From assembly GCF_032191835.1 (NCBI RefSeq), contig NC_083227.1:17608001-17672000 (forward strand): a stretch of 64,000 bases of DNA, written 5' to 3'. The number at the start of each line of letters is the position of its first letter. Position 1 is the stretch's first letter. Shown piece by piece: positions 13,013 to 64,000 of this stretch. A program made the translations under genes and the position numbers. The notes under the pieces were generated by a model. It saw nothing but the letters and a program-made list of their open reading frames with translations. It was not told where the DNA came from and made no database searches. Origin of the DNA: Heteronotia binoei (Eukaryota).

Positions 13013-13139
13013 TCTCCCTTGTCCTTTGAGGAGGTGGCCGTGTATTTCACCGAAGTTGAGTGGGGCCTGCTGAATCCAGGTCAAAAAACTCTTTATACGG
13101 AAGTCATGGCGGAGAATTATGGAAATGTGGCCTCTCTGG
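13013..13139 (+). CDS. Paralog A exon: KRAB-A box (127 nt)
   Basis: [42 protein letters not shown]; canonical 127-nt phase 0-to-1 exon. Confidence 0.92.
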
Positions 13140-15539
13140 GTAAGGATCTTCTAACTATAGGTGCTAATTGCTGCCATTGGGATGATGCGTGACTCAAAAT
13201 ATTGAAATGCAGTATGTGGTTGTGAGGCCTGCTAAGCTACTTGCTCCCCCCCCCCCCCCAGGGCCTCCAGGACCTGGGGTGGCACTGAAAATGAAGTTCA
13301 GCATGGCTGGAGAGAGTGACCCCAGCTCCCTGGCTAACCCAGGGGCAGCAGTGTTTCGGCCTTCACCCAAGCCAGAGAGGGTGCCATGGCCTGTGGCCAA
13401 GGTGGGGCTGAGAGGCCCTCAGAAAGACTGGAAACATATCTTATTATGTAAATTCCCGATTCCCCGAGATAACTATATGAGATGCATTTGCTTGGAAGAA
13501 GGATAAATGTTTAGCTGTGAATAGTGTTATAGGATAGATTATAGTTTTAAATATGTGTTGTTTTTGTTGATTTTTCACTATCTGACAGCAATGAAGACCC
13601 TGTGAATTTAGGGGGAGGTGTTTGTGAGTTTCCTTCATTGTGCAGGGGGTGGGACTAGATGACCCTAGAGGTCCCTTCCAACACTATGATTCTATCATTG
13701 TTATCTGTAGATAGTATTTTTTAAACAATTCAGGAAATAAAATTTATTAATTTAAAAAAAGAGGCTCTGGAAGGGGCCAGATCCTGATTTCTCAGGGGCC
13801 ATCCTCTACCACATGCCCCTGCCCCAGATGGGATTACAGCCACCCTCTCTGCCTGTGATCAGGAAGGGATCTAACTCCTTTCTTTAGGTTGGAATTTGGG
13901 GCTTTGATTTTGACCATGGCTCCATCCCCCCCATAAGAATTTTTCCTCTTCCTCGGATTTTTTTTCTTCCTCATATAAGAACAATAACTTTCTGTCTCTC
14001 TGTCAAAGAAGCCAGGAATGGAAGAGAGACTACAGTGGAGAGCAATGGACACTTTGTGTCCAAAGAATGGCTGGAGAGTTTCTCAGGAAGATCTCAGGAG
14101 ACTCTTTCTTTTCCACATGAGCTGCCTGCCAGTGAGTATCTTTCATGGTTATGTCAAGGAAATTAGCAAGAAATAGCAGGGGACCTTTCCTCTTCACTTC
14201 TAGGCAACTCTTGGTTTAGTAGAATGATCAAGTTTGGTAGGTAAGGAGGGCTTCTAGGCCGGATATATGAAGATTTGGGAGCTCCTTCTGGGTCTGAGCT
14301 CAGCTGTGGCTATTGATGGGCTGCACTCTCCTTAAATAAAGGACATTCCATGGAGGGGAGGGTTATCTAAGAACAACCCTGCTGGATGAGATCAAAGGCA
14401 CATTTGCCCTCTCCTACTATGGTCTGCTGGATGTCTTCATTCCTTAGGTGGAGTTGGGTTTGAGTGCTTTCTTCGGAGCTGTTCTACCTTGTAGGGGTGG
14501 TGTCCAATTCTTTCTTTCGAGGTGCTCTACCTTGCAGGGATGGCGTCTTGCAGATAGTTCCACTCAAGGAGGACCAGCTTCTGTCAAACCACACAGCATG
14601 CTCTGTTGTGGTGAGGGGAATCAATGTTCACCCCACGGGTGTGGAATCGTGTGCTATTTAAGCGATTCCCACTCACCTTGTCAACCCAGTAAGCACAAAG
14701 TCAAGTTCTCCTTTGAAGCAGAGTTGGTTGAGCCACAACAGGATAGGGAAAGCCCTGTAGCCCCTTCCTGTCTCCCCAACAGGCAGGTGACTGACTCCTT
14801 CCCAAACACTATTTCCCTTCCACCCCCTTCAGGTAGGAAAGCATCTGCTGCAGAAGAACAGACATACACAAACAGAAATAACGGGTATATCTGTCTGATC
14901 AGTGTGCCCTGATGTGTGGCTTTCTCCAAGGCCAGCCAGCACTATCTCGCCCTGTCCCCAGGAAAGAGGATTGACAACAATAACAACCGTGTGGTTTTCT
15001 AAGGTGCTGCCCAACTAACTTCCTCGCACTTCCCTTCCATCGCTCTGGTCATGCTGTTCCTGTGCATATCTGCATGTTCACTGCGGGTTGCAAGGGTTTG
15101 GGGAGGATGGGTCAGGACAAACTCTCCTGGGGTCGGATCTGGACTTTCTGACACTACGTGCTCCTCTAGGGTTGATTTCCAGTGGGGCTTTCTCTGCTGT
15201 GTCATTTTGTAATCAGAAAATGACCTTGAGTTCAATAAGCCACTTTTCTGGCTGACCATAAGATGCACTTCTTTCCAGAGAGACAGGTTGACTCTGTGCT
15301 TCTAGGAAAGGCAGAAGTGCCTGGATGATTCAGAGATGGCCTAGAGAGCACTTGGAGATAGCAAGAAAATGGCTCTGAATGTAGGTGGACTTACACTGTA
15401 GGGCTGCTTTTCTTACTTGTCATTACCTTCCCCCCCCCTAACAAATGGCACCTCTTCCAAAACCATGGGTGTCTCTTTTAAACTGTAGGGTACCCTTTGT
15501 GAGTTCCTGGCTCCTCGCTGCCCCATAGCAAGGGTGTTT

Positions 15540-19905: not shown

Positions 19906-20053
19906 CTATGGGAGGGCCTGGCAGGTGTGACCAGTGGCTGAGTTTCAGAGGAAGGAAAATCTTACTGAGGACTTACTCACCTATTCATGAGCAGGGCCTA
20001 GCTGGTGGCTTGGCTTCTTGCTTGGGTGCTGATGAAGACTCTCTTTATTCCAG

Positions 20054-20179
20054 CAGCAGATGCAGAGGAGACAGCTGGGGAATTCCAGGGATTCTCTTTG
20101 GAAAATGCCAAGAATGAAGATGCTGAAGGAAAGTTGGGAGATGGAGATGTAGCACAGAGGCAGGAGCAAAGCCATGCAG
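20054..20179 (+). CDS. Paralog A 126-nt acidic linker exon (stub of a decayed ZF exon)
   Basis: Polypyrimidine tract with CAG|CAGCAG acceptor and CAG|GTAAGA donor; phase 1 to 1; identical length in B and C. Confidence 0.7.
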
Positions 20180-20445
20180 GTAAGAGGAGGAATAAGCCCA
20201 TTTCTTGCCAAGGAGGGGTTTTCCATGAAATCCCAGACCAAGACAGGTCATGAAAGAAAAAGAGAGAGAAAGGGAGGGAGGCCTGCATGGGAACCAGTAA
20301 ATCCTCTCCAAGGAAAAAAGTGGAATAAAATTGTGGCCTTCGCAGACACCTTCAGTCAAAGAAAGAACGTCATTAGACACCAGTTCCCTTAGGAGAGAAA
20401 CCGTATAATCACTTGAAGTACAGAAAGAGCGTCTATGGGAAAACA
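20180..20445 (+). pseudogene. Decayed remainder of the upstream zinc-finger exon copy
   Basis: KRRNKPISCQGGVFHEIP parallels [16 protein letters not shown] of the live exon; stop at 20251; relic EKPYNHLKYRKS. Confidence 0.7.
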
Positions 20446-21449
20446 GTCCAGGTGAGCACTATAGGAAAAAAAAGGGGCTCCCTGCGTTTAAGCAAAACAT
20501 TCTGCACTAAAATGAATTCAAACAGCCCGCAGAAAAATAAATCAGAGTGCACACAGGCACTTTTAAAGTGCACGCAGGCACTTTTTAAAGGTTAAGAGTC
20601 TGCTTTTGACGCATAAACCAAAATCATGAGACGACGGTCTGTAATGAATTCTTTCATCCAGATCACACACAGACACTTAAATTATCCCACTTCACAGTCT
20701 TTCATATTTAGTCCACTATTGTTTCAATGAGGTGTTAGGACAAAGAAGAAGTTCATCCACATAAAGCCAGTCCATGTTAGCTGGTGTCAAATGTTTCGTT
20801 GCCTTTTTCAAGACTGATGACTTTTAAGCGGAAATGTGGAAAAAATGTTTAAATTCATTTTAGTGAAGACTGTTTGGGAAAAGAGGTTATGCCAAAGTGC
20901 CTGCGTGCACTCTTGTGTTTCATATTGCAGTCTGTTTAAAGGTAGAAGCTTTGGAATACTAAAGTGCCTGTGTGCACATTTATATTTTTCATCTTAGATT
21001 ATTTAGAAATAGAGTCTACTCAGAAGTGAAGGCCACAGGGTTTTTCCTATCACATACTTTTTTTCCTGTAATAAAGATTTTGCTAGTATAGTTTCACCCT
21101 GATGTTTCTTCTAATATAGTCTTACTTCTGGTGGAACTGTCCTGCTCTCACCTGCAGGCCCTGTTCCTTTTAAACTCAGAATTGAGGTTTTGCTCAGTTC
21201 AAATCTGCATCCCAAAGTGCATTTCTTCCCACTTCACATCTAAGACATCATACAGATGGGAAGTTGTACAAATGGTCAGAGTCCCAAACAAGGTTCTCTG
21301 ATGCAGGTTTAATGTACCTTTATTGTACACTTCAGTGTACGTTAGGATGAAGCCACTGAAATATTTGGAGTGCCTGGATGGAAGTTCAGGTGCAGATTAG
21401 ATCTCCTTGTGTGGGTTCTAAAAGGATCTCTCTCTCTTTATTCCTTCAG

Positions 21450-23260
21450 GAGATGATCAGTGGGCTGAGGAGGATGAGGAACAGCATCTTTTATCACCAG
21501 ATGAAATCCAGAATGAAGATATGAGGGGAAATGTCAGGAATCACGTAAGACCTAAGAGGCAGAAAGTCAGCCATGTGGTCAAGAAGAGGAGTAAACCCAT
21601 TCCTCGCCAAGGGGGGGATTTCCAAGAGGTTGTGCACATGTTGGAAGAAACAGTCAATGGCTTGGAGTGCGGAAAGAACATTTTAGGTCAAACACAATGT
21701 AACGTCCATTTAGAAATGCATAGTGGAAATAGCACCCATCAATCCCTGGAGAGTGGAGAGACCATGATTCACAGAGCAGACCTTTGTAAACATCAAAGAT
21801 CACATATAGGAGAGAACCTTTATAGGTACTCAGACTGTGCCAAGAGCTTTTCAGAGAAATCAGACCTTGACAAACACCAAAGCACACATTCAACAGAGAA
21901 GCAATTTATCTACTCAGAGACTGGAATGGCATTCTCTGATGGAAGAAAGCATAATGTACACTTCCCAAAACCCAGTATAATGAAGGCGCATAAATGTTTT
22001 CAGTGTGGAAAGTACTTCAGAAACAGATCACATCTCATTGTGCACCAAAAGATCCACAGAGAGGAGAAACTGTTTGAACTTTCAGAGTGTGGGAAAAGAT
22101 TCAATCATAGCAACAGTTTACAACAGCATAGACAAACCCACGCACGGGAGAAGCCTTTTGAATGCTCAGAGTGTGGAAAGAGATTCATCTGGCATGGCCA
22201 TCTTAAAGAGCATCAACAAACTCACACAGGAGAGAAGCCCTTTGAAAGCTCAGAGTGTGGGAAGAGATTAATTCGCAGTACCATTTTTCAAAAACATCTT
22301 AAAATCCACACAGGGGAGAAGCTGTTTGAATGTTCAGAGTGTGGGAAGAAATTCCGTCGAAGTGACAGTCTTCAAGAGCATCAACGAACCCACACAGGGG
22401 AGAAGCCCTTTGAATGCTCACTGTGTGGGAACACATTCACTCAGAGAAGCCATTTATATCATCACCTAAGAATCCACACAGGGGAGAAGCCTTTTGAATG
22501 CTTTGAGTGTGGGAGGATGTTCAGTCGAAGTGACAGTCTTCAGCACCATCAGTGGACCCACGCAGGGGAGAAGCCCTTTGAATGCTCAGAGTGTGGGAAG
22601 AGATTCATGCAAAGGGGCACTCTTCAGAATCATCAAAGAACCCACACAGGGGAGAATCCCTTTGAATGGTCAGAGTGTGGAAAGAGATTCATGCACATTG
22701 GCACTCTTCAGAAGCATCAACGAATTCACACAAGGGAGAAGCCCTTTGAATGCTCAGAGTGTGGGAGGAGATTCGTGCACAGGGGCACTCTTCAACAGCA
22801 TCAGCGAACCCACACAGGGGAGAAGCCCTTTGAATGCTCAGAGTGTGGGAAGAAATTCATGTACAGTGGCGCTCTTCAGAAGCATCAACGAACCCACACA
22901 GGGGAGAAGCCTTTTGAATGCTCAGAATGTGGGAAGAGATTCAATCGGAGTAGTTCTCTTCAACAGCATCAACAAACCCACACAGGGGAGAGGCCGTTTG
23001 AATGCTCAGAATGTGGGAAGAGATTCAGTCGGAAAGGCACACTTCAACAACATCAACAAACCCACTCAGTGGAGAAACCATTTCAATGCTCAGAGTGTGG
23101 GAAGACATTCACTCGGTGTGCCAATCTTCGAGGACATCAAAAAACCCATACAGGGGAGAAGCCCTTTGAATGCTTAGAGTGTGGGAAGAAATTTTTTTCA
23201 AGTGGTACTCTTCAAAAGCATCAACGATACCACAAAGGGAAGAAACTTTTGAATGTTTAG
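21450..23260 (+). CDS. Paralog A terminal exon: 15 C2H2 fingers (3 lack the first Cys)
   Basis: TTCCTTCAG| acceptor in phase with KRAB; TGEKPF linkers. Spliced protein about 843 aa, or 885 aa with the 126-nt exon. Confidence 0.95.
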
Positions 23261-23640
23261 AGTATGGGAAGACATTTATTTGGGTGGCACTCTTTAAGAT
23301 CATCAGCGAACCTACACAAGAGAGAAGCCCTTTGAATATGCAGAGTGATTCAGCTGGCGTGGTGTGCTTCAACAGCAAACCGGCACAGAACAAGGTTTTT
23401 GAATGTTCAGAATGTGGAAAGCTACTTAGAGTGGCATTCTTCAACAGCATCTATGAACCCATGTAGGGGAGAAGCCCTTTTGAAGGCTCAGAGTGTGTGA
23501 AGAAATTCAGTCACAATGATACTATTTAACAATATCTAAGATGACATACAGAAGAGAAGCCTGTTGAATGCTCAGGGAGTGTGAAAACATTCAGTTATAG
23601 TAGCACTCTTCATCTTCCACACAGCCTACACAGGTGAGTG
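23261..23640 (+). pseudogene. Decayed zinc-finger repeats in the 3' UTR of A (B equivalent about 38889-39260)
   Basis: GAGAAGCCC TTTGAA TGCTCAGAGTGTG-like units continue out of frame after the stop. Confidence 0.8.
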
Positions 23641-23687
23641 TGCAAACAGATTCAGTCAGAGTGGCACTCTTCAACAACATCAAAGGG

Positions 23688-24391: not shown

Positions 24392-24868
24392 TAAAAAAAT
24401 ACAAGGAAGCTGGGAAATTTTGGCACTTCAAGCCTACTGAACCTATGAATGTGGCAAGACGGTCCCTTGAAGAAGGATAGTATATCCAAAATGAAATTGG
24501 ATCGGTTCTTTTTTCTTGTTGGACTTGCTAAAAAATCATTCTGGACTTTGGACAGTAGCTATGTTGTGCAGTGGAAGATTTTTCAATTGCATTAGTTTAT
24601 GTAAGCTTAAGGTGTTTTGTTGTATGTAGTTCGTATTACACATTGCTACTAATTTGTAAACTGAGAGAGTGTGTTTCTTTCAAGTTATTGTACCTCCGTA
24701 GTCCCAACTATTTTTGGTGTCCCTCGATTGCAGCTGGCGATCTGAGCACTGGGGGGCCTCCACACGAGTGCAGCTGGGTCTCCCAAGCACAGCAGGAGAC
24801 CTGGGCATTGGGAGGCCTCTGTGGGAGTGTGGTTCAGTCCCCTGAGTGCAGCAGATGATCCGGGCACC

Positions 24869-25126
24869 ATTTGATCTCTAGTTCCTCTACCTCTTTGAAA
24901 CCCAGCTTGTCCTTCTGGTAGTTCTCTATCCATGTACTGCTGAAGCCTAGCTTGTAAGATCTTGAACATGGCCTTGCTAGCATGTGAAATGAGTACAATT
25001 GTGCGATAGTCTGGATATTCTTTGGCATTGCCCTTCTTTGGGATTGGAATATAAACTGACCTTTTCCACGTCTGTGGCCACAGTTGTGTTTTCCAGATTT
25101 GCTGGCATATTGAGTGCAGCATCATT
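24869..25126 (-). mobile_element. Internal Bov-B (RTE) reverse-transcriptase fragment
   Basis: LHSICQQIWKTQLWPQTWKRSVYIPIPKKGNAKE...QAGFQRGRGTRDQ. Confidence 0.9.
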
Positions 25127-25157
25127 GTAAATCAAATAAGTAACAGGCAGCGCTTCT

Positions 25158-31616: not shown

Positions 31617-34432
31617 TAGATACCAATTGCTGCCATTGGGATGAAGCATGACTCAAAATTTTGAAAAGCACTGTGTAGTTGTCAGGCCTGCCCAGTAACT
31701 TACTCCCCCCTCCCCTGGGGCCTCCAGGACTTGGGGTGGCAGGGAAAGTAACATTCAGAATGGCTGATCCAGGGGCAGCTGAAGCCAGTGATGTGGACAT
31801 CACCCAAGCCAGAGAGGGTGCCCTGCCCTGTGGCCAAGGTGGGGCTGAGAGGCCCTCAGGAAGACTGAAGGGGGCAGATCGTGATTGCTCAGTGGCCATC
31901 CTCTGCAACATGACCCTGCCCCAGAAGGGATTACAGCCATCTGCTCTGCCAGTGATCAGGAAAGGATCTAACTCCTTTCTTTTGGTTGGAATTTGGGGAT
32001 TTGATTTCGACCATGGTTGCATCCCTCCATAAGAATTTTCCCTCTTCCTTGGATTTCTTTCCTTCCTCATATAAGAACAATAACTTTCTCTCTCTCTCTC
32101 TCTCTGCCACAGAAGCGAGGAATGTAAGGAAGACAATAGGGGAGTGCAAGGAAGGCTTTGTTTTGGATGAATGGCTGGAGAGTTTCTCAGGAAGATCTCA
32201 AGAGACTCTTTCTTTCCCGAATGAGCTGCCTGCCAGTGAGTATCCTTCATGGTTATGTCAGGGGAATGGGCCAGGAATAGCAGGGAACCTTTTCTCTTCA
32301 CTTCTAGGCAACTCTTGGTTTAGTAGAATAATCAGCCCTGCTAGGTAAGGAGAGAGGGAGGCCTTCTGGGCACAGGATGTGGAGATTTGGGAGCTCCTTC
32401 CAGGTCTGAGCTCAGCTATGGCTCTTGAGGGGCTGCACTCTCCTTAAATACTGGGCATTCCATGGAGGGGAGGGTTACCTAAGAACTGCCTTGCTGGACG
32501 AGATCAAAGACCCATCAGGCCTCTCCTACTGTGGTCTGCTGGATGTCTTCATTACTTAGGTGGAGATAGGTTTGAGTGCTTTCTTTGGAACTGTTCTACC
32601 TTGTAGGGGTGGTGTCTAGCAGATGGTCCCACTATTTAACACTGCAACCCAAAAGGAACTGGCTTCAGCCATATCATATAGCACACTCTGTTGTGGTGAG
32701 GGGAATCAGTGGTCACCCCGTTGAGGCAGGAAAGCATCTCCCACAGAAGAATAGACATGTCTGATCAGTGTGCCCTGATGCGTGGCTTTCTCCAAGGCCA
32801 GCCAGCACTGTCTCGCCCTGTCCCCAGGAAAGAGGATTGACAACAATAACAACCCTGTGCTTTCTAAGGTGCTGCCAAACTAACTTCCCCGCGCTTCCCT
32901 TCCATCGCTCTGGTCATGTTGTTCCTGTGCATATCTGCATGTTCACTGCGGGTTGCAAGGGTTTGGGGAGGATGGAACAGGACAAATTCTCCTGGGGTCG
33001 GATCTGGACTTTCTGACACTATGTGCTCCTCTAGGGTGGATTTCCAGTAGGGCTTTCTCTTCTGTGTCATTTTGTAATCAGAAAATGACCTTGAGTTCAA
33101 TAAGCCACTTTTCTGGCTGACCATAAGATGCACTTCTTTCCAGAGAGCCAGGTTAACTCTGTGCTTCTAGGAAAGGCAGAAGTGTCTGGATGATTCAGAG
33201 ATGGCTCAGAGTGCTGCTTGGAGATAGGAAGAAATTGGCTCTGAATGTAGGTGGACTTTCACTGTAGGGCTGCTTTTCTCACTGGTCATTACCTGCCCCC
33301 CCCCCAACAAATGGCACCTCTTCCAAAACCATGGGTGTCCCTTTTGAATTGTAGGGTCCACTTTGTGAATTCCTGGCTTCTCACTGCCCCACAGCAAACT
33401 TGTATTTTTCGCTTAAAACCTTACATTGAAAGAAACCGTTTAAAGCCATAATATATAGAAGAAACAGGAATAAATTGGCAATAAACAATACAATCAAGGA
33501 ACATGGCCAAACTTATGCAACCATAATTAAGAACAATTTAAAAAGGGAGGGAGGAAATGGAGGAAAGCGGAACAAAACAAAGGTAGAACAGCAATACATC
33601 ACTGTAGTCACAAAAACAAATATAACTAACGATTTCTTGGCCTGCAGCTAAAAGCTGGAGTAACAAGATTTCTTTGTAAGCAATGTATTTAGCAATAGAG
33701 TTAGTATAAAAGGGGTCATTACCAATTTTCTCAAGGATAGAAAACCATATAGCCATGTAATTTTGATAGGCCTGGTAGGGATCAGATTGATCCAGGCCAG
33801 AAGAAATCTTGTCCATAGTGATATGATCCCAGATCTTGTTGGACCAGGAGTCAAAAGTCAAGCCTTTTGGGTCCTCCTAAGTTTGGGTAATAACTGACTT
33901 AGCAGCCGTTATGAGTACTGTTATGAATGCTCTTTGGGCAGATTTTATTTTTATAATTGGACCAATTATTGAGAGGAAGTAGGCCTGGGCAGAAAGGAAT
34001 GTCAAGATTTGTAATGTATGTATGGTAATGAAATATACGCTTCCGAAAGGCAGTGACGCTTTCGCAGTCCTACCAGCAATGAAGATAGAAAGCGACAGCC
34101 CCACAACCCCTCCAACAAAGAGGGGAGTATTGTTTGTTGAAGTCATAAAGGCACAAGGGGGGAGCAAACTTGTATTTTTGGGTGACTGAAAACCAGTTCC
34201 TTTTGGGTTCTCATCACATCTAGAAAGACACTCTCTGTGTAGTTACAGGACCAGTTATCTTAACTTCTTGTATTTAATCATCAAGACCAGAGAATCAAAA
34301 GACATGCTCAGCACATCAAGTGGGTCTAGTGAGGGAACAAATCTTTGCCACTTTCCCCCTTGATGTACATCCTGGGGGAGGGGGGGATTAGAGGAATAGG
34401 CTGAATATGAACTCAGCACTCTGGGAGGGCCT

Positions 34433-36617: not shown

Positions 36618-36743
36618 CAGTAGATGCAGAGGAGACAGCTGGGGAATTCCAGAGATTCTCTTTGGATAATTCCAAGAATAAAAATGCCAAAGGAAAGTTG
36701 GGAGATGGAGATGGAGCACAGAGGCAGGAGCAAAACCATGCAA
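36618..36743 (+). CDS. Paralog B 126-nt acidic linker exon
   Basis: TTTCAG| acceptor, CAA|GTAAGA donor, then a 166-nt intron to the finger exon. Confidence 0.65.
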
Positions 36744-36909
36744 GTAAGAGAGGGATAATCCCATTCTTTCCCAAGGAGGGGGCTTCCATGAAATCCCAGA
36801 TCAAGAAGAGAGGTCATGGAACAAAAAGAGAGAGGGAGGGAGGGAGGCCTGCATGGAAACCAGAAAATCTTCAAGGAAAAAGGGAAATGATCTCTCTTTA
36901 TTCAAGCAG

Positions 36910-38888
36910 GGGATGATGGACAGAATGAGGAGGATGAAAAACTGCATCATGTATCGCCAGATGTAATCCAGAATGAAGATGTGAGGGGAAACTTTAGGAA
37001 TCAAGGAAGACCAAAGAGGCAGAAAGGCTGCAATGTGGTCAACAAGATGAGTAAACCCATTCTTCGCCAAGGGGGGGATTTCCAAGAGGTTATTCACGTG
37101 TTGGAAGAAACAGTCAACAGCTTGGGGTGTGGAAGGAATGTTTCAGGTCAAACACATTATAATGTCAATTTAGTAGTGCACAGTGGAAAGAGCACCCATC
37201 AATCCCTGGAGAGTGGAAAGACCATGATTCACAGAGCAGACCTTTGTGAACATCAAACATCACATACAGGAGAGAAACTTTATAGGTACTCAGACTGTGC
37301 CAAGAGCTTTTCACAGAAATCAAATCTCGTTAAGCACCAAACCATTCATTCAAGAGAGAAGCAACTGATGTGTTTAGAAACTGGAATTGCATTCTCTGAT
37401 GGAAGAAAGCATAATGTACACTTCCCAAAACCCAGTATAATGAAGGGGCATAAATGTTTTCAATGTGGAAAGTACTTCAGAAACAGATCACATCTCATTG
37501 TTCACCAAAAGATCCACAGAGGAGAGAAACCATTTGGATGCTCAGAGTGTGGAAAGAGATTCAGTAGGAGTGGTGATTTTCAACAGCATCAACGAATCCA
37601 CACAGGGGAGAAGCCTTTCCAATGCTCAGAGTGTGGGAAGAGATTCAGTCGTAGTGACAGTTTTCAACGGCATCAACAAACCCACACAGGGGAGAAGCCA
37701 TTTGAATGTTCTGAGTGTGGGAAAAGATTCCGTCGGAGTTATAGTCTTCAAGAGCATCAACGAACCCACACAGAGGAGAAGCCCTTTGAATGCTCAGAGT
37801 GTGGGAAGGCATTTAGTTCTAGCGGCAGTCTTCAAAAGCATCAACGGACCCACACAGGGGAGAAGATGTTTGAATGCTCAGAGTGCGGGAAGAGATTCAG
37901 TTGGAGTGGCCCTCTTCAACAGCATCAGAAAACCCACACAGGAGAGAAGCCCTTTGAATGCTCAGAATGTAAGAAGAGATTCATGCACAGTGGCACTCTT
38001 CAAAGACATCTAAAAACCCACACAGGGGAGAAACCTTTCAAATGCTCAGAGTGTGGAAAGAGTTTCCATGAGAGCTGCCACTTTAAAGAGCATCAAAGAA
38101 CCCATACTGGGGAGAAGCCCTTTGAATGCTCACTGTGTGGGAAGACATTCACTCAAAGAAGTCATTTATATCATCATCTAAGAACCCATACAGGGGAAAA
38201 GCCTTTTGAATGCTCAGAGTGTGGGAGGATATTCAGTCGACGTGACAGTCTTCAACAGCATCAACTGACCCACACGGGGGAGAAGCCCTTTGAATGCTCA
38301 GAGTGTGGGAAGAGATTCTCGCAAAGTGACACTCTTCAGAAGCATCAACGAACCCACACAGGGGAGAAGCCCTTTGAATGCTCAGAGTGTGGAAAGAGAT
38401 TCATGCACAGTAGCACTCTTCAGAAGCATCAACGAATCCACACAGGGGAGAAGCCTTTTGAATGCTTAGAGTGTGGGAAGAGATTCATGCACAGTGGCCT
38501 TCTTCAACAGCATCAACGAACCCACACAGGGGAGAAGCCCTTTGAATGCTCAGAGTGTGGGAAGAGATTCAATCGGAGTAGTTCTCTTCGACAGCATCAA
38601 GAAACCCACACAGGGAAGAGGCCATTTGAATGCTCAGAGTGTGGGAAGAGATTCAGTCGGAAAGGCACCCTTCAACAGCATCAACAAATCCACTCAGGGG
38701 AGAAACCATTTCAATGCTCAGAGTGTGGGAAGACATTCACTCGGTGTGCCAGTCTTCAAGGGCATCAAAGAACCCACACAGGGGAGAAACCCTTTGAATG
38801 TTCCGAGTGTGGGAAGAGATTTATTTCCAGTGGCACTCTTCAAAGGCATCAACGAACCCACACAGGGAAGAAACCTTTGAATGTTTAG
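36910..38888 (+). CDS. Paralog B terminal exon: 17 intact C2H2 fingers
   Basis: AAGCAG| acceptor in phase 1. Spliced protein about 894 aa, or 936 aa with the 126-nt exon. Confidence 0.95.
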
Positions 38889-55700: not shown

Positions 55701-56624
55701 TAGGTGTTAATTGCTGCCACTGGATGATGCATGATTCAAAATATTGAACAGCAGTATGTGGTTGTGAGGCCTGCCCAGCTACTTGCCCCCCACTGAGGGC
55801 CCCCAGCACTTGGGGTGGCAGTGAAAGGGAAGTTCACGATGGCTGGAGAGAGCAGCCCCAGGCCCCTGTCTGATCCAGGGGCAACTGAGTCCAGTGTTAT
55901 GGTCATCACCAAAGCCAGTGAGTCTATCCTGGTCTTTGGTCAAGGCAGGGCTGAGAGGTCCTCAGAATCACCCTGGGAGGGGCCAGATCCCAATTTCTCA
56001 GTGGCCAACCTCTACCACATGCTCCTGTCCCAGACGGGATTACACTCATCCATTCTGACTTTGATCAGTAAAGAATCTATCTCCTTTATACTGGTTGAGA
56101 TTTGGGGCTTTGATTTTGACCATGGTTCCATCCTCCCAGATGAGTTTTTCCACTTCCTTGGATTTCTTTCCTTCCCTGTGTAAGAATCATCACTTTCTGT
56201 CTGTCTGCCAAAGGAGCCAGGAATGTAAGAGAGTCTACAGTGGAGAGCAATGAACACTTTGTGTCCGAAGAATGGTTGGAGGGTTTCGCAGGAAGATCTC
56301 AAGAGGCTTGCTCTTTCCCACATGAGCTGCCTGCCAGTGAGTATCCTTCATGGTTATGTCAAGGGAATGGGCAGGAATAGCAGGGGACGTTTCCTCTCCT
56401 CTTCTAGGCAACTCTTGGTTTGGTAGAATGATCAAGTCCACTAGGTAAGGAGGGAGGGAGGCCTTCTGGGCCTGGGATGTGGAGATTCAGGAGTGCCTTC
56501 TAGAGCTGAGCTCAGCTATGTCTCTTAGAAGATAAAGATTTGACAGGTGCCACACCCTGCTAGACATGACTTCAGGGGTCCTGGCAAGGGAAGTGGGGCA
56601 TGACCAGTCAGGGATCCTCTAATG

Positions 56625-63617: not shown

Positions 63618-63743
63618 CAGCAGATGTACAGGAGACAGCTGGGGAATTCCAGGGATTCTCTTTGGAAAATGCCAAGAATGAAGATGCTGAAAGAAAGTTG
63701 GGAGATGGAGATGGACCGCAGAGGCAGGAGGAAAGCCACACAG
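63618..63743 (+). CDS. Paralog C 126-nt acidic linker exon; decayed ZF-exon remainder follows to the window edge
   Basis: TTCCAG|CAGCAG acceptor, CAG|GTAATA donor; downstream frameshift and relic GEKPYNCLEHGKNF. Confidence 0.68.
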
Positions 63744-64000
63744 GTAATAGGAGGGATAAACCCATTTATTTCCAAGGAGGGGATTTCCATGAAATCCCAG
63801 TCCAAGAAGAAAGGTCAATTAAAAAAAAGAAAAGAAACAGGCCTATGTGCAGATAGGAAAATCCACTCCAAGGAAGAAGGGAAATGAAAGCTTGGTCTTT
63901 GTAAAGATCTTCAGTCAGATAATGAATGTCATTTCACAGAAACCAATTCCCTTAGGTGAGAAACCATATAATTGTTTAGAGCATGGAAAGAACTTCACTG

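Follow-up and report, generated by a model that had tools for sequence, protein, structure and literature searches.

What is a 126-nucleotide (nt) open stretch doing between the KRAB side and the finger exon of a zinc-finger gene, and where did it come from? The question is raised by a 64,000-nt window of the gecko Heteronotia binoei (NC_083227.1, positions 17,608,001 to 17,672,000; positions below are counted from the first nucleotide of this window), in which self-comparison, Pfam and tblastn with two database proteins identify three tandem SCAN-KRAB-C2H2 paralogues, here termed A, B and C. A preliminary description of the locus regarded the stretch, here called the stub, as the recycled start of a dead duplicate of the finger exon. 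The present analysis indicates that the stub is probably a genuine, frame-neutral phase 1-1 coding exon and the tail-decayed product of a shortened older exon. Judging from the gecko sequences compared, the most likely course is that a 5′ splice site within a live internal exon cut this exon short and that the severed tail decayed afterwards.

On the plus strand, the stub occupies positions 20054–20179 in gene A (...ttattccag^CAGCAG...CATGCAG^gtaaga, with ^ marking splice boundaries), 36618–36743 in gene B (...tatttcag^CAGTAG...CATGCAA^gtaaga, donor at 36744) and 63618–63743 in gene C (...ttattccag^CAGCAG...CACACAG^gtaata, donor at 63744). As previously described, all three units are stop-free, 126 nt long and phase 1-1, with an AG acceptor and a GTAA donor, and the unit is common not only to the three paralogues but to at least nine copies in two gekkonid genera. 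In the alignment of these nine copies, the acceptor region of A (20014–20053, plus strand) is conserved and comprises a branch-point-like GCTGATG, a pyrimidine tract and the AG. The 5′ splice site of A, GTAAGA (20180–20185, plus strand), lies within former Gly-Lys codons of the old exon. The 42 codons of the A stub specify an acidic linker, and the peptide of the three copies can be written as A/V-D-A/V-E/Q-E-T-A-G-E-F-Q-...-Q-R-Q-E-Q/E-S/N-H-A/T, with 8–11 acidic and 3–6 basic residues among 41 in each copy; Pfam gives no match in the stub. A, B and C themselves would be spliced at these sites, and the stub would then most likely separate the KRAB side from the finger exon by an acidic, Gly-rich, probably unstructured spacer of 42 residues, a role that may be its only one.

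Downstream of the donor, gene A carries a decayed tail of the ancestral exon (KPISCQGGVFHEI; 20186–20450, plus strand) with a stop at 20251–20253 and the relic GEKPYNHLKY near 20392–20436. This tail can be aligned both with its counterparts in the other copies and with the full-length exons at the gecko loci L006 and L007 (P-numbers below denote database protein models and L-numbers gecko loci; for example, L001 is the locus of P0002 and L005 is from Gekko). The decayed tail of C (63744–64000, plus strand) meets a stop 38 codons in and holds the relic GEKPYNCLEHGKNF in another frame. If the old frame is followed past the donor, it gives KRRNKPISCQGGVFHEI in A and NRRDKPIYFQGGDFHEI in C and stays open for 23 and 37 codons, respectively; an open frame in three copies alone is weak evidence, and the strength of the case comes from nine copies. 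In B, the intron after the stub (36744–36909, plus strand) is 166 nt long as against 1270 nt in A, and consists of a frameshifted tail start, with a 1-nt deletion 7 nt into the intron, fused to the live-exon acceptor. A 20319–21430 has no counterpart in B, which has lost about 1.1 kb here and kept both splice sites, as the preliminary description noted. Its read-through stops, at 20251 in A and 36914 in B, were likewise confirmed.

Sequence similarity ties the stub to the live finger exon. The stub plus its read-through matches the head of the live exon of A with 40% identity over 47 amino acids (ungapped, E = 1e-9), and the live head as tblastn query matches the stubs of A, C, L001 and L007 (E about 3–7e-7; searches were made exon by exon or with database proteins). 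Within a single protein, a full-length exon matches the main exon over its head and first fingers with 28% identity over 167 amino acids (E = 5e-15). Descent of the stub from a duplicated 5′ part of the finger exon is supported by these alignments, and the decayed finger-exon homologue described upstream of the live exon is borne out by the match to the live head and by the finger relic GEKPY, kept in the tails of A and C. The further claim that the live exon is without a donor holds at the homologous site, which reads GTG GTC AAG AAG, but not for the whole exon of A, where a strong, unrelated donor-like CAC^GTAAGA is found at 21545 (window 21542–21550; B has CAA GGA AGA there).

Gene models of other copies place the stub in spliced products. 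NCBI models of paralogues in H. binoei and Gekko japonicus use exactly the stub acceptor and donor, and P0002 of H. binoei contains the stub twice with the same boundaries (...HELPAT-ADVEETTGEYQRF...QEESHA-E/D-next exon). The stub of A shares 69–71% amino acid identity with the P0002 stub exons, and both L001 stubs precede the same decayed tail. The stub end (...SHA/GHT/CHR) is joined directly to the next exon in P0003, P0007 (Gekko japonicus), P0008, P0009 and P0012. There are no stub copies in the gene at L002, one in each window gene and two at L001, and all models seen of stub-bearing genes include the exon. The suggested survey for the same unit elsewhere, made with a profile of five stubs against 1.84 billion representatives, yielded 17 proteins, exclusively from geckos (Heteronotia, Gekko japonicus, Paroedura, Sphaerodactylus, Euleptes and Eublepharis); a word-based search with the P0002 stub region returned only P0002. 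The gene of P0002, a protein without KRAB, shows a tandem duplication of the pair formed by the ARN exon and the stub (L001 13448–13573, 22481–22606, 26205–26333 and 28095–28220), and the tail of the first L001 stub is interrupted by about 2.9 kb (L001 22717 to 25615).

The origin of the stub is suggested by relatives in which the exon is longer. In Sphaerodactylus townsendi P0010 (L007 8866–9291) and Eublepharis macularius P0021 (L006 9699–10130) it is annotated as a full-length internal exon with a G^GTGAG donor after a finger; it comprises 142–144 codons in these genera and is spliced to the main finger exon. Its parts are, in order, an acidic head, SHV/SHA-KK-x-RD-x-PIPCQGG, NQRIHS, a finger and the donor, and the same layout is seen in Paroedura P0019 and in Sphaerodactylus P0005, P0013 and P0018. 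At the donor site, the two long forms whose DNA was read have GCA AAG AAG and GTA AAG AAG, whereas the gekkonid copies have GCA GGT AAG AGG. Other long-form proteins, known here by protein only, carry D, E or N at the residue homologous to the donor, and a GAT-to-GGT change would be one possible origin of the latter.

According to the proposed history, the head of the terminal finger exon would have been duplicated long ago in geckos. The upstream copy would have become an internal exon of about 140 codons with an acidic head, KKRDKPIPCQGG, a degenerate finger, one finger and its own donor after ...HTG, a long form that the models of Eublepharis, Sphaerodactylus and Paroedura still show. At codon 42–43, a gekkonid subfamily (Heteronotia, Gekko) would then have gained the strong 5′ splice site CAG^GTAAGA; splicing would have shifted to this new donor, and the distal two thirds of the exon, now intronic, would have decayed separately from paralogue to paralogue. 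This order of events, in which a live exon is shortened, appears the more plausible one, because in Eublepharis and Sphaerodactylus the exon is kept at full length, lacks an internal GT and has a donor of its own further downstream. The preliminary description had assumed another order, in which the upstream finger-exon copy died first as an unspliced intronic pseudo-exon and its first 126 nt were later exonized by way of a chance donor. This scenario fits the dead tail of most gekkonid copies and the resemblance of the stub acceptor context to that of the live exon, and type-1 heads that also open the terminal finger exons of P0006 and P0015 agree with a terminal-exon origin. It is nonetheless distinctly unlikely, given that in Eublepharidae, Sphaerodactylidae and Paroedura the exon is internal, open and full length and ends at a 3′ donor of its own, and that two Heteronotia copies have open tails; a dead stage before splicing is thus unneeded and less parsimonious. 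What stands of the earlier proposal is the duplicate origin and the acidic linker; its order of events does not, since the exon of Eublepharis and Sphaerodactylus is full length, live and internal. In the two Heteronotia copies, both at L003 (19024–19500 and 37425–37900), the whole ancestral exon is open for more than 100 codons beyond the GGTAAG donor, and the finger cysteines are lost. In P0011 of Euleptes europaea, the stub ends seven codons later (...SHTAKRKDKS^GDDQW), which may reflect independent shortening at another donor.

Nucleotide conservation was assessed in an alignment of nine gekkonid copies (A, B, C, two from L001, two from L003, L004 and L005 of Gekko), with rates expressed as Fitch steps per site on the tree of these copies. 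The rate is 1.5 steps per site more than 40 nt upstream of the exon, 0.43–0.58 at positions −40 to −1, which hold GCTGATG and the pyrimidine tract, 0.58 in the exon, 0.83–0.99 in the first 63 nt of the tail and 1.4–1.9 in the later tail. A conserved island therefore extends from about −40 nt through the donor, flanked by rates two to three times higher. The exon accumulated 72 steps compared with 147 in the next 126 nt (p = 4.5e-8), and donor positions +1 to +6 show one step where about eight are expected (P = 0.003), the GT being invariant in 9/9 copies. In three close independent pairs, 34/372 sites differ in the exon and 136/905 in the flanks (p = 0.005).

The reading frame is maintained in the same interval. 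The sole indel of the exon is a 6-nt in-frame deletion shared by the clade of L003 and Gekko, where the exon measures 120 nt, and frame-shifting events account for 0/18 pairwise gaps in the exon as opposed to 58/75 in the adjacent tail. Lesions lie only 3′ of the donor, as had been noted for A, B and C: at least six independent disabling lesions are found in the first 42 tail codons and none in the 42 stub codons of the nine copies (sign test about 0.016). Four of them are stops (A, C, the first copy of L001, and L004), while B has lost 1 nt and Gekko 26 nt; only these six unambiguous lesions were counted, and the purine microsatellite region aligns poorly. Random substitutions would create a stop in 4.5% of cases in the purine-rich stub, so that the probability of all copies remaining open after 72 substitutions is 0.037. 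These data bear on the view that the stub is not an exon at all but an intronic relic, open by chance or through gene conversion with its neighbours, and that the models are prediction artefacts. Consistent with this view are a ratio of non-synonymous to synonymous differences (pN/pS) of about 1, the frame open past the donor in A and C, a divergence between paralogues of just 9–20% and a search for transcript-derived fragments without a run-assembly match. The view is very unlikely in light of the island bounded by the branch-point and acceptor region and the donor amid flanks evolving two to three times faster, of the nearly invariant donor, of the complete absence of frameshifts and stops from nine stubs when the adjoining stretch of equal length has six or more, and of identical boundaries in models of two genera annotated years apart.

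At the codon level the signal is different. Taken over all pairs, the stub has a pN/pS of 0.77, and four independent pairs give 1.06 (41 codons in nine copies). The A-B values for the fingers, KRAB-A and the live head are 0.57–0.74, which suggests that the stub peptide is at best weakly constrained. Synonymous changes amount to 2/46 in the stub and 20/77 in the live head for the same gene pairs (p = 0.003, small counts), while non-synonymous rates are equal. Slow synonymous sites with unchanged non-synonymous rates are the pattern generally reported for alternatively spliced cassette exons. The stub could accordingly be a regulated cassette or alternative-5′-site exon in which selection acts on the RNA and not on the peptide, and which tunes KRAB-finger spacing or gives fingerless SCAN-KRAB products, the latter seen in the preliminary description as a possible dominant-negative switch through donor skipping. 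A length that is a multiple of three, symmetric phases, conserved flanking intron (−40 to −1 and the donor) and the slow synonymous sites would all suit such an exon, as would P0014, a model from another locus that reads through the paralogue donor to a stop, and P0004 and P0008, in which the stub leads to short alternative ends. With counts this small and the exon present in every model of a stub-bearing gene seen, regulated use is possible but doubtful. An extended form of the idea is unlikely as a whole: the copies would make up a series of one eroding exon, running from full length with a finger, through full length with dead finger cysteines and the 49-codon Euleptes form, to the 42-codon form with a decayed tail, and selection on the RNA would maintain this last micro-exon as a regulated cassette that, by being included, skipped or read through at its donor, switches between a full repressor and a fingerless SCAN-KRAB protein.

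Several observations weigh against a shortened coding exon. The open L003 tails, the read-through of P0014 and the partial conservation of the first ~60 nt of the tail indicate that the old long form may persist in some genes. No purifying selection at the amino acid level was found in the stub. Gene conversion between paralogues could raise nucleotide conservation, and the polarity of the change rests on paralogues, which are not proven orthologues. The search for transcript-derived fragments across the KRAB-stub-finger junctions returned only three NCBI models and none from run assemblies, and NCBI models may be partly ab initio. The products of A, B and C themselves were not found among the database proteins, where a word-based search with the head of the A finger exon found only P0001 and P0002. 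These two H. binoei NCBI models, the closest database proteins to the window genes, belong to other loci and are paralogues.

The stub takes its place in an exon chain that is shared by the three genes, all on the plus strand: A at ~10.4–23.3 kb, B at ~29.4–38.9 kb and C from ~53.1 kb to the window end, with its finger exon beyond the window. The SCAN domain (PF02023) is recognized by Pfam in A (E = 9e-35) and B (E = 2e-35) and by tblastn in C. The KRAB-A exon of A (13013–13139, plus strand; PF01352, E = 1.1e-20; splice sites checked) is 127 nt long, as are those of B and C, found by tblastn with 75–80% identity. Between KRAB-A and the stub sits a further phase 1-1 exon of 123 nt (ARNGRETTVESN...SFPHELPA), located on the plus strand at 14009/14012–14131 in A, 32113–32235 in B and 56214–56336 in C (by tblastn and splice sites in all three). 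The A copy is 76–83% identical to P0001 and P0002 in tblastn, and the exon has no Pfam match. Its acceptor is a tandem AAG^AAG of the NAGNAG type, of which NCBI models of paralogues use either AG, and its donor reads CCA^gtgagt. With this exon in between, a direct KRAB-A-to-stub junction (13139>20054), as first assumed, is probably not the main one.

In A and B, the C2H2 fingers are arranged in tandem within a single terminal exon, according to Pfam. The live spacer-plus-finger exon of A (21450–23260, plus strand) is open to 23257, where a stop follows, and has zf-C2H2 and zf-H2C2_2 matches corresponding to 12–13 fingers; that of B (36910–38888, plus strand) has 16–17 fingers. After the A stop at 23258, finger-like sequence (e.g., ...ECLEYGKTF...) runs on in another frame (window 23170–23680), and the finger array of A may be frameshift-shortened relative to the longer array of B. 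Elsewhere in the window, long open frames on the minus strand at 194–1141 and 24688–25131 are probably intergenic repeats, the latter resembling a long interspersed nuclear element (LINE) reverse-transcriptase fragment.

No paper describing the stub exon in geckos was found in the literature. Publicly available models of paralogues include it already, and the mechanism itself is known. The case is a tidy but fairly ordinary piece of exon evolution, and it leaves the general view of how a KRAB zinc-finger protein works unchanged. It corrects the exon chain of these SCAN-KRAB genes and offers a clean multi-copy example in which one new splice site shortens a coding exon and the discarded part decays, with intermediates kept among paralogues and gecko families. 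In the canonical arrangement of a KRAB zinc-finger gene, KRAB-A occupies an exon of 127 nt, the middle exons (KRAB-B or spacer) are small and phase 1-1, and spacer and fingers share a single exon, with degenerate finger relics in the spacer. The gecko genes share the 127-nt KRAB-A exon, symmetric phase-1 middle exons, the phase-1 terminal finger exon and finger relics in the linker. They differ in that the extra middle exon is not KRAB-B but a truncated duplicate of the head of the finger exon, seen only in geckos in the profile search. A short symmetric exon beside a non-coding relic also recalls the exonization of intronic or pseudogene sequence; however, the ancestral state in relatives is coding, which points to exon shortening and not to exon birth from non-coding DNA.

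The proposed history follows the model in which a constitutive exon acquires, by mutation within it, a rival splice site and so becomes an alternative 5′ splice-site exon (Koren, Lev-Maor and Ast 2007, PMC1876488). As in that model, the longer ancestral exon is present in relatives, an internal mutation would have given rise to a strong GT donor, and the mRNA would no longer contain the sequence from the new donor to the old one. Unlike in that model, shortening is apparently complete in most of the gecko copies, where the distal part is disabled and the two sites no longer compete, and the exon belongs to a multi-copy family in which several stages coexist in one genome.

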